The translations under genes were made by a program, and so were the position numbers. A DNA stretch of 64,000 bases from Saccostrea echinata (lineage: Eukaryota): positions 4,588,001-4,652,000 of the forward strand of contig NW_026889757.1 of the NCBI RefSeq assembly GCF_033153115.1. The letters are read 5' to 3'. Within the stretch, counting starts at the first letter, position 1; the number at the start of each line of letters is the position of its first letter. Below are positions 30,316 to 33,808 of this stretch, piece by piece. The notes under the pieces were generated by a model. It was given only the letters and a program-made list of their open reading frames with translations. It was not told the origin of the DNA and made no database searches.

Positions 30316-33300
30316 ATGAAGCGCACACATTCATTTCCAAAGAAGTATGCGGAATATGTGGTGACTTTTCCAAAGAAAAAAAGTAGGGATTTACCCGAAG
30401 ACGATACTGGATCCGTGGATGTAAATAATGGCGATGAGATAAATGAAGATAACATAAGCAAAACCAAGGATAAAAAATGCAAGAAAGATGACCTGGATGA
30501 TGGGGTCGCTGAGTCTATTAAAAACAATTCCACCACAAGTTCTTGTGATCGCGAAATAAATCAAGATATCATTACGGAAAATGAAAACATAGAACACAGA
30601 GAAGATGCAATTGACGATGAAACCGAAGATTTGAATATCAATAAGAATAGTACTAGGCAGCAGAGAATGGAGAATGCAGATAAACATTTTAATGATATCA
30701 AGCTACTATCCGATGGTAAGAAAAAAGGTGACGTAGAATCCAGTTTGGATACCACTGACGATGATCTAGACTGTTCACCAAATGAAAAAGATTTTGGGTA
30801 CGAATTTCACTACAACAGTTTTAGCGAAAACTCTAATGACGACAGCATTGAAGTAAGAAGCATATGCTCGTCAGATAGTGATGTATGTAGTTTTTCCCAC
30901 TCTTATTTAAAAGGTAGGCACTTCAATGATTCAACTGACAGCGAAAAAGAAGACTCTTTTGAAGAATTCAAAGACAATATTAAAATTAACGAACGAAAGA
31001 ACGACGACAACAATAACAAAAATACTATAGATGAGGAGAAGGAAAATTTTACATTTACCATTCCGTTTTCTGAATGGGTAAAACTTCCCTTTGTAGACAA
31101 AGACTCTTATAGACGCCTTGGTGGGAACATGTGTTTTGGTGTTCAAATACAATAGAATATCCAGAAGTAATAAGGCCGCTCAATACGGCTCATTTTCAGC
31201 TAATTGTAAGCACAAAATGTGTTCAGCAGTTTACAAAATGACGATCAGCGATGAACCCGACGGAAAATCAGCAGTAGAGGTAAATGTTAGCCGAACAGGA
31301 AAAATATCAGAGAGGAACGAAGAGAAATCGAGATTTGTAAAAGACCAGAGACGAAGTCTCGTGAAACAAGAGTTGACGACTAAATCCCCATACATGTACC
31401 GGTCCGAACTTTTACTCGAAGCAGACAGTAAACAACTTAATGCCGGTAACTTTTCAACAGTTCCAACAAAAGATGTCCTGAAACAAATAAGAGCGGAGGA
31501 AAGACAATACGAAAAATTGAGTGACTGTGTAATAAGAGAAATTTATGCCGTGAAGAAAACATTCGAAATTTTGGATACAACAGTTAAACCAGTAAATGGA
31601 TACATTCAGTTTATCGGATTTGAACCCTTTTTTGTGATTAATTTTTGCGGCGAGCAAATCAGCCTTCTCAGAGATGCTTGCAGGCGAGAGGATTGCTACC
31701 TGTATTTTGATTCAACTGGACTCTCTATGAAACGACCTATGGACCAACCCAAGAGAATTTATATGTACTGTCTTGTTCTCCAAACTCGAAGGCATGAAGG
31801 AGGCGTTAGAGTGGCAGAGATGTTAACAAATGACCATTCTACTCCATCCATTACTAACTTTCTCTTGCGAGTAAGACAAGCTATCACAACAGGCAGTTTT
31901 TTTCGAGCACCAAGAAAAATCGAGACGGATTTTAGCTTTGCTATGATTCATGCTGCATGCAGGGCATTGAATTCTTGCAGTTTAGTAAATTATCTAACAG
32001 AATGTTGGAACAGAATAACTTCATCTACAACTTTGTCATCCAAATTTACCATTCTACACATTTGTGCTGCACACATGCTGAAGTTATTTCAAAAATTAAT
32101 TGCTCAATCAACAGAGATCAAAGATGTGAGGAAATTTTGGTTGTATGTATTGGCAAGATTACAAACTTCAACATCACTGGAAATGGCCACAAGTTTAGTT
32201 GAGGATATAACAACAATTTCAAGAAGTAAGCTGATCAGTAAGACAGCAAAAAAAGCATTAGATCGACTAAGTACCACCATAAAGATGCAAGGCACCAGTA
32301 TTGAAGAAGAAAATGCATTTAATCTTACATACGATGCGCCACGCGAATTGCTCGATGGGGAAACTTTGAGGTCTCAATCCCCGTTCTACGAATACTTCGA
32401 GAAAATTATAGATGAAGCCTATATCTCCGATGCATTAAGATACAAAAACCCATTTTACATTCCAACGCTTCCTGAGAAAATCCTGAAACAATACTTACCT
32501 TTTTTCCCTCTTTGGTCCGGTATCCTATTATTAGGACCAGACAGAAATTTAATTGAGGGATCCAACAGAGACACCAATGCTGTTGTTGAAAGCCACTTTT
32601 CAACAATTAAAAATGAAATATTACAAAAAGAAAAAAACATCAATCCAGCAAAGGCCTGTCGTCTATTCTATGTGTCAGCAAAAGGCTTGGCCAAATCCTC
32701 TCTTGTCTCTGCGGGGAAAAGGAGAGTTAAAGATGACACCCAAGAAGAGGAAAAATGGGAAAGATCGGGACAACGGAACATTACCAAAAAAAAGAAGTCA
32801 AAATACTTTTCAAGTCCATCAAACTTAAAGTTTATGAAAGTCAACGAGGAAGTAAATGATAGTTTAGAGGAAGCAGCATTAAATTTCAAAAAGTCAAAAA
32901 CATCTCAAAAAAAATCAAGCAAAGATCGAAAAGAGCGTGACGCAGACAAGAAAAGAGGCCAAGAATTTATGAGTACAGAAGAGTCATCATTTGACTTTAC
33001 AGATGAGAATGCCATGAAATGGGGTGGCTTTGACAAGGTTAAGACAGGGATTTCACTGTCCAACACATGTACAATTGACAACATACTAACTGCTCTGCAC
33101 ATAATAATATCTTCTCGTTCCGATGTTAGGTTGGAACTATCAAAATGCAAAGATACTGCAATCCAGCTAGTAATAGAGATATGTCTAAATGACATGCGAC
33201 AGCGGAGGTGGACAGATGCCAAAATTAAATTTGTGAAAGACCTCCTTCGGAAACAAGGTTCAAACGTAGATTTGTTTGGTTCTGAGTTTGAAATGACGGT

Positions 33301-33808
33301 GAAACACCTTGTCAAACCTCAAAGTCACATAACTGAAACAGAATGCATTCGGTGTTTGAAGAAAAAGTCTTTTCGGAAGGACCTTATCGAATTAGGGCTA
33401 GGAAGGCATAATCAAAACACAATTCACGATCTTCTATTTGATTGGGAGCATGGAACTTCATCTCGTTGCCCTTTAAGATGCGGTGGCAAAACAACAACAA
33501 CACGACATTTTGAATCCACACCTGTGTTATTATTTGTTACAGTTGACTTGGCATCTGCTGAAGGCAGACTAATAACTGATTCTTTAATAGATCCCGTCAT
33601 AATTGTTGGCCAGCAGTACGATTTGTATGCAGCAACTCTGAATCGGCATGGTCATTTCCGTTTGTTGGTAAGGTCTAAATCCGATGGTCCATGGTATAGT
33701 TATGATGGTCTTCGGGCTAAAAACAGATTTGAAAAACTTGAACGTTTCAGATGTAGGTCAAATGAAACAGTTGTCAATCTTATATATGTCAAATGTCAGA
33801 GTAATTGA
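30316..33808 (+). pseudogene. MULE/NOF-like DDE transposase with C-terminal USP-like cysteine-protease domain; frameshift at ~31120-31155
   Basis: Two overlapping ORFs (30316-31155, 31118-33808). Transposase motifs are YFDSTG (D, 31709), ETDFSFAM (D, 31928), HICAAH (CxxH, 32063) and RDTNAVVESHF..K (E, 32588). The C-terminus has NTCTIDNILTAL, CIRC…CPLRC, HGHF and WYSYDG. Confidence 0.85.

Follow-up and report, generated by a model that had tools for sequence, protein, structure and literature searches.

A divergent USP-fold peptidase domain at the end of a Mutator-like transposase in a Foldback-like element of Saccostrea echinata

The stretch of DNA analysed here, which we call the window, comprises 64,000 nucleotides of contig NW_026889757.1 of Saccostrea echinata (assembly GCF_033153115.1, positions 4,588,001 to 4,652,000 of the forward strand). 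It is AT-rich, with about 33% G+C, and the assembly that was searched for related copies is eukaryotic, with 923 Mb in 425 contigs. The window contains a 24.6-kb Foldback-like Mutator element with a single gene, and the 896-codon frame of that gene encodes in succession a transposase core, a Lys/Arg-rich linker and a tail of 275 amino acids. The tail is confirmed as a genuine, highly divergent USP-fold domain (clan CA, C19-like), in which Cys, His and Asp follow each other in the USP order. A sequence-only reading of the window had proposed that the transposase was fused to a USP-like cysteine protease, and the three catalytic residues that it named are all at the positions it gave, with the CIRC and CPLRC motifs present as well (Table 1). 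The Lys-rich linker that it placed after the transposase core is likewise present.

In the case of the tail, an exhaustive HMMER search with the 275 residues gave 61 relatives in the databases, and alignment A1 consists of 15 of them. A word-based search of protein sequences brought up no more than two close orthologues when the tail was queried and five proteins when the core was, and little was gained by taking the family alignment as the query. The residues that are invariant or nearly so in A1 are the N-T-C-x-x-D of the Cys box, a GSE motif, two of the zinc-ribbon Cys and the H-F of the His box. Among the 61 relatives the catalytic Cys is kept in all 58 of the rows that cover it and the catalytic His in all 31, and the third position of the triad is Asp in 29 of 31 covering rows and Asn in the other two. 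The zinc ribbon is less uniform, with two of its four Cys (domain positions 122 and 167) invariant in A1 and a third kept in about 13 of 32 rows. When the A1 profile was compared with PDB sequences it matched USP46 (E 4.4e-5) and USP36 (E 0.04), and the alignment with USP46 is in register through the Cys box, the CxxC...CxxC fingers, GHF/GHY and YDG/FDD. The relationship to C19 peptidases that had been proposed is thus borne out by the family profile, and the triad is both intact and conserved in homologues, which was one of the checks that the sequence-only reading had put forward.

Another check was prediction of the fold followed by a structure search. AlphaFold2, run on A1, gave for the final 275 amino acids a model that has a pLDDT of 87.4 and a pTM of 0.88, and in Foldseek it matches USP catalytic domains only, with E values of 3e-13 and up and a probability of 1.00. 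With VIA-align the model can be superposed on USP35, USP30, USP18, USP7, USPL1, USP46 and CYLD over 220-243 of the 275 residues, with Z scores of 15.5-17.7 and a root-mean-square deviation of 3.5-4.6 Å. The predicted fold is therefore the one that had been expected.

The nearest neighbours of the domain in the ESM Atlas are a chordate C14orf28 cluster (0.97) and clusters of PF00443 (0.94). The best full-length match among stand-alone proteins is P0010 from the clam Mercenaria, annotated by NCBI as 'C14orf28 homolog' (E 5e-12, residues 14-251 of 275), and a sea-urchin member of the family is labelled 'USP domain-containing protein' in UniRef. Human C14orf28 was classed in a 2023 survey as having a papain-like domain of deubiquitinase type and of unknown function (PMC10318531). 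Going by the sequence links through the clam homologue and the ESM cluster, the window domain would belong to a C14orf28-like branch and not to the canonical UCH family of Pfam. Fused and stand-alone proteins are interleaved in a tree of 53 domain rows made by a quick maximum-likelihood search, and the clam C14orf28 homologue is beside fused fish proteins (SH-aLRT 89); the tree would fit capture of the domain as well as its domestication. We suggest very tentatively, and with some doubt on our own part, that the C14orf28-type domain may be primarily a transposon module and that the stand-alone animal genes, including vertebrate C14orf28/DRIP1, may be its domesticated remnants. If that were so there would be a new class of transposon-borne deubiquitinases outside Pfam, and a human orphan gene would be given an origin and a testable biochemical activity.

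We also modelled the domain in complex with ubiquitin, using the ubiquitin of the polyubiquitin gene of the same genome. The predicted complex has an ipSAE of 0.75 in three runs, as against 0.01 for the best control, with at least 93% of contacts agreeing between runs and a partner pLDDT of at least 87. In the benchmark for the complex score, 51 of 78 solved complexes came up to the mark, as did 2 of 108 mismatched pairs. Residues 72-76 of ubiquitin contact domain residues 28-31 (which include the Cys), 99-101 (GSE) and 224-226 (which include the His) in the model, with Cys651 and His846 each in contact with Gly75, and the zinc-ribbon region contacts the body of ubiquitin. The modelled complex appears consistent with the usual USP geometry. 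We infer that the domain would be an active isopeptidase for ubiquitin or for a ubiquitin-like modifier.

Table 1. Features of the element and of its gene, with positions in the window (TIR, terminal inverted repeat; TSD, target-site duplication)
Feature	Position	Strand	Basis
USP-fold cysteine peptidase domain, C14orf28-like branch (predicted), 275 aa	32981..33805	+	fold, profile, triad conservation, complex model
Catalytic Cys651 in Cys box NTCTIDN (box starts at residue 649)	33068..33070	+	58/58 conserved; aligned to USP46 Cys box
Fingers zinc ribbon, C743-x2-C746 and C784-x3-C788	33344..33481	+	aligned to USP46 CxxC...CxxC region
Zinc-ribbon Cys pairs, CIRC and CPLRC	33344-33355; 33467-33481	+	
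Catalytic His846 in HGHF (33647-33658)	33653..33655	+	31/31; aligned to GHY of USP46 and USP36
Third triad residue Asp863 in YSYDG (33695-33709)	33704..33706	+	aligned to FDD Asp of USP46
Lys/Arg-rich linker (EEKW...KKKKSKYF...)	32747..32980	+	25% Lys plus Arg; pLDDT <50 in model
DDE catalytic core	31709..32590	+	conserved in 10-12 of 12 aligned transposases
Residues of the DDE core: D198; D271; H314-x-C316-x2-H319; N487-x3-E491	31709; 31928; 32057-32074; 32576-32590		
Conserved Cys/His cluster N-terminal to core	31130..31228	+	C...C-x4-C pattern in alignment A2
Frame of transposase, linker and USP-like domain	31118..33808	+	896 codons open; first ATGs at 31217 and 31238
Separated N-terminal coding piece, acidic and of low complexity	30316..31128	+	from ATG to deletion point
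Junction of derived 49-nt deletion, frameshifting	31128..31129	+	segment retained in two other genome copies and in orthologues
Whole Foldback-like Mutator element, 24.6 kb	13511..38120	+	TIRs and 11-bp TSD
Left TSD, TGCAAGTAAAA, 11 bp	13500..13510	.	identical 11-mer abuts both element ends
Right TSD, TGCAAGTAAAA	38121..38131	.	same 11-mer as left
Left arm, outer part, 37/76-bp tandem repeats	13511..14039	.	inverted match to 37509-38116; TRF period 76
Left arm, inner part, 177-bp satellite	14112..18470	.	TRF period 177, 21.8 copies
Right arm, inner part, inverted 177-bp satellite	34280..37211	.	34280-36111; remnants 36635-36745 and 37080-37211
Right arm, outer part, 37/74-bp tandem repeats	37509..38120	.	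inverted relative to left outer part; TRF
Nested unrelated high-copy 1.1-kb repeat	27136..28232	.	second copy at 40484-41658, outside the element

The transposase part, which is made up of the first 620 residues, matches nothing in Pfam, including MULE (PF10551) and Transposase_mut (PF00872). The structural model is of moderate confidence (pLDDT 71) and its top match in Foldseek is ISCth4 of the IS256 family (E 1.6e-5, TM 0.2-0.38), followed by the P element, Hermes and RAG1. The IS256 elements are the bacterial kin of eukaryotic Mutator, and the ESM neighbours of the transposase carry PF10551, the MULE domain (0.91). In view of the ISCth4 match and of these neighbours the MULE label that the transposase had been given is a reasonable one, and the HxCxxH and NxxE motifs and the target-site duplications of 9-11 bp bear it out. 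The data thus support the assignment of the N-terminal part as a Mutator-like DDE transposase. A KDZ/Zisupton transposase was our first guess, since some ESM Atlas neighbours are from Basidiomycota and a link with Ulp1 is known. It was rejected as there is no match to PF18758 or to the CxC clusters and the duplications are of 9-11 bp. The duplication made by Zisupton is 8 bp (PMC12730594).

The Cys/His cluster that precedes the core is a putative zinc-binding module for DNA recognition, judged from its pattern, and in the window copy its first strand has been removed by a deletion that is discussed below. The EEKW and KKKKSKYF motifs of the linker are conserved across paralogues, and the linker is a probable nuclear localisation region.

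The element is bounded by terminal inverted repeats that read GATGTGTAAAG... from 13511 and GGTATGTAAAG... from 38120 inwards as the reverse complement, and the alignment just inside the termini has 94% identity over 86 nt. The 177-bp satellite of the arms has about 22 units on the left and about 10 on the right, which suggests that the two arms have expanded unequally. The same termini are found in opposed pairs, 1.4-3.2 kb apart, at no fewer than 10 other sites in the genome, and target-site duplications of 9-11 bp were present at all five of the sites examined. These short relatives are non-autonomous derivatives of the element.

The product of the 896-codon frame has 77-80% identity to P0001 and P0065. 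In the orthologues P0065 and P0087, which were found in other samples, the protein is uninterrupted and has 1164-1191 amino acids, and comparison with them shows that the N-terminal part of the window copy, about 270 amino acids, is in a separate frame (30316-31155). The coding piece before the deletion point can be aligned with the first 290 or so residues of P0065, and the frame stops at 31155. Alignment with the copies on contigs C6 and C33 shows that the 49-nt deletion at this point is specific to the window copy, and the lost segment encodes a conserved W-DVF-HFN-VQP region. It had been claimed that transposase and peptidase share one open frame, and this holds for the 896-residue open reading frame but not for the N-terminal part of the protein, which the deletion has cut off.

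There are three full-size copies in the 923 Mb, of which the window copy is the best preserved and the other two are decayed, with 88-92% identity to the window copy, several insertions and many stops. Because the N-terminal part was lost through a frameshifting deletion of 49 nt, the window copy is probably a recently crippled autonomous copy. The other two (G000:C6:13838339-13863735 and G000:C33:228975-287481) have internal insertion points in common, and one of them is stretched by insertions to about 58 kb. They may be duplicates of a single decayed copy.

The genome also contains a paralogous family (L013) in which a transposase, a Pfam UCH domain and a Peptidase_C48 domain are encoded in a single long gene. 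The UCH domain is split by an intron, with the two exons matching at E 4.8e-10 and 6e-15, and the Peptidase_C48 domain matches at E 2e-13. One copy with its flanks is at G000:C30:34716026-34752446 and there are further copies on C3 and C9. The elements are Foldback-like and 29-36 kb long, with arms made up of 7-10 kb of an inverted 323-bp tandem repeat and near-perfect inverted termini that begin ACTAGACTGAAGC..., and at three sites they are flanked by target duplications of 9 bp. The copies are 97-99.7% identical, which indicates that the family was recently active. The sequence-only reading had contrasted the tail with the Ulp1/C48 protease that is the usual accessory protease of such elements. 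The contrast is an apt one, as paralogous elements of this genome carry both USP and Ulp1; the Pfam Peptidase_C48 domain, in which the order is His-Asp-Cys, was not found in the window protein.

A second paralogous family (L005:1495-3675 and L015:3240-4592) has a transposase with 31% identity. The L005 frame ends just past a canonical-looking Cys box, NNCWLNSTLQS, and the end of the frame is probably an intron or a break.

The order of transposase, linker and USP-like domain is also found in P0025, P0056, the fish proteins P0028 and P0096, the sea-urchin protein P0106 and several fragments. The arrangement has been kept among paralogues at 25-31% identity and across phyla. P0056 has an extra PHD finger at its N-terminus. 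It was deposited (NCBI MES9880808.1) under a metagenome-assembled genome of Sedimenticola, and is most likely eukaryotic DNA that was binned by mistake. The USP-like domain is also found behind a SWIM finger (P0059) and behind a Harbinger-type DDE_Tnp_4 (P0037), and these two architectures indicate that the USP-like module joined more than one transposase lineage. Conversely P0097, a relative of the transposase, has Ulp1/C48 in place of the USP-like tail.

We think it likely that the gene of the element encodes a Mutator/Foldback DDE transposase joined by a Lys-rich linker to a genuine USP-fold peptidase, and that this peptidase is active and serves the element. It would remove ubiquitin or a ubiquitin-like modifier, the tail of ubiquitin being modelled on Cys651 and His846, and its covalent link to the transposase would bring the peptidase to the site of transposition. 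Its action on behalf of the element may be to spare the transposase from ubiquitin-dependent turnover, or alternatively it might strip ubiquitin or SUMO marks off chromatin or repair factors at the element ends. The presence of USP and Ulp1 stacked on one paralogous protein suggests that these elements benefit from taking off marks of the SUMO type as well as ubiquitin.

Several observations weigh against an active USP encoded by a working element. Searches of Pfam and NCBIfam, and single-sequence searches of PDB, gave no match for the whole protein or for the 275-residue tail; the domain is under the threshold of Pfam UCH and matches no family of Pfam even when E values as high as 1 are allowed, and none of 15 family members matches any Pfam model. 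When the family profile was compared by hhalign with the canonical USP exons of the paralogue, exon by exon, the motifs paired correctly but the matches were not significant. Read from the sequence, the domain has neither the Asn that canonical USPs carry five residues ahead of the Cys nor their QQDAxEF, and the conserved GSE..F motif occupies the place of the canonical motifs. The 5' end of the window copy is frameshifted. With regard to the complex model, the score may be due to solved USP-ubiquitin complexes that the predictor has memorised, and it does not discriminate between ubiquitin and SUMO, NEDD8 or ISG15.

Some of these points would also fit a USP-fold pseudo-enzyme, or a module for binding ubiquitin or ubiquitin-like proteins, that brings the transposase to chromatin carrying ubiquitin or SUMO but has no cleaving activity. 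The domain is far from canonical USPs, with no Pfam match; the canonical oxyanion-hole and QQDAxEF motifs are missing when judged by sequence; and what the complex model shows is binding and not catalysis. However pseudo-enzymes usually lose at least one residue of the triad, and in this family Cys, His and Asp are strictly conserved among proteins with 20-30% identity, as expected of an active enzyme. We thus regard a role in binding alone as unlikely, although it is the strongest of the alternatives.

The peptidase might instead be directed at its own protein, cutting after Gly-Gly and so freeing the transposase from the tail. There is a WGG about 14 residues before the catalytic Cys that is conserved across the family and could be such a site, and in coronaviruses there are USP-fold proteases that cleave the polyproteins after Gly-Gly. 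However in the model the WGG is inside the folded domain, in a strand (residues 16-18, pLDDT 76-88), and is so near the active site that it could not be cut in cis, and there is no other conserved Gly-Gly site in the linker. Self-processing is for these reasons very improbable.

We give about the same low credence to a domesticated host gene, derived from a transposase and inherited vertically. The small number of full-size copies, three in 923 Mb with two of them decayed, is what one might look for in such a gene, and orthologues have long open frames at 59-80% identity in which the USP part is conserved equally with the core. Set against this are the intact terminal inverted repeats and 11-bp target-site duplication around the gene, the presence of the same termini on at least 10 short non-autonomous elements that have duplications of their own, the frameshifting deletion in the window copy, and the recent activity seen in paralogous families with copies 97-99.7% identical. 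That the tail is an unrelated zinc-binding domain resembling USPs by chance, as the lack of single-sequence database matches might suggest, can be put aside as extremely improbable, since profile, fold, conservation and docking all point to USP and the idea is contradicted by Foldseek and VIA-align.

The preferred reading, a transposase carrying a USP-fold peptidase for the use of the element, can be compared with several known systems. With the USP/UBP family (MEROPS C19, PF00443, including USP46, USP12, USP30, USP18, USPL1 and CYLD) the window domain shares the thumb-palm-fingers fold, with Z up to 17.7, and a Cys box at a helix start, zinc-ribbon fingers, a His box and an Asp in the same order; the complex model would place the tail of ubiquitin in the catalytic cleft. 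It differs in being below the Pfam threshold, at 10-17% identity, in being compact (275 amino acids) and fused to a transposase, and in having NTCTIDN where USPs have GNTCYMNS and GSE..F where they have QQDAxEF. C14orf28 (DRIP1) is a stand-alone host gene, whereas the window domain is the tail of a transposase, and in the literature covered we came across no publication that connects C14orf28 with transposons.

The Ulp1/C48 proteases of Mutator-like elements (the plant KI-MULEs) and of other DNA transposons are comparable as accessory proteases for ubiquitin-like proteins on elements of the Mutator superfamily. However the order of catalytic residues in C48 is His-Asp-Cys, whereas the window protein has Cys-His-Asp, a different fold family and an in-frame fusion to the transposase. 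The VTD/OTU domains of Helitrons are likewise papain-like domains of deubiquitinase type in a transposon protein, in which the catalytic residues are retained in autonomous copies and which have been repeatedly domesticated into host genes (PMC9741609). They are on a rolling-circle element, whereas ours is of the USP class and on a cut-and-paste DDE element, and for VTD deubiquitinase activity has been shown at the bench (PMC9741609), whereas the activity of the window domain is only predicted. The authors of that study propose that VTD protects the transposition proteins from degradation (PMC9741609), and the role that we suggest for the window domain follows the same logic.

Drosophila FB, Phantom, Muta1 and IS256 elements such as ISCth4 form the Foldback/Mutator group, with which the window element shares long inverted arms of tandem repeats, target-site duplications of 9-11 bp and a DDE core in which the second D is followed, ahead of the E, by a C/H motif. 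It differs in its C-terminal USP-like domain, in having no match to Pfam MULE or Transposase_mut, and in being very large, with a length of 24.6 kb for the window element and of 29-36 kb for the L013 family.

Proteases of the Ulp1, OTU and VTD classes were already known on transposons, and VTD is both active and repeatedly domesticated (PMC9741609). In the literature, which was covered mainly outside subscription journals, we found no description of a transposase with a domain of the USP class or of the C14orf28-like kind. The in-frame fusion of a USP-class domain to a cut-and-paste transposase would be a fourth class of transposon-borne protease, and together with the paralogues in which USP and Ulp1 are stacked it suggests that several kinds of mobile element need to remove marks of the ubiquitin type. 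The domain defines a protein family outside the coverage of Pfam, and the fusion offers a compact USP of 275 amino acids for biochemistry. The sequence link to C14orf28 gives a concrete hypothesis for the activity and origin of an orphan gene that is conserved in animals. Giant Foldback-like transposons with arms made of satellite arrays also bear on how satellites are seeded and spread.

Two further features of the element have no part in the argument. The 1.1-kb repeat nested in it forms an inverted pair, 81.5% identical, with a second copy outside the element, and this pair was considered as a set of terminal inverted repeats and rejected, as the repeat is unrelated and occurs in thousands of copies (more than 3000 candidates across the genome at first look, with 80-87% identity). 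The element also includes, at about 25830-25980, a stretch of N that is either masked sequence or a gap.

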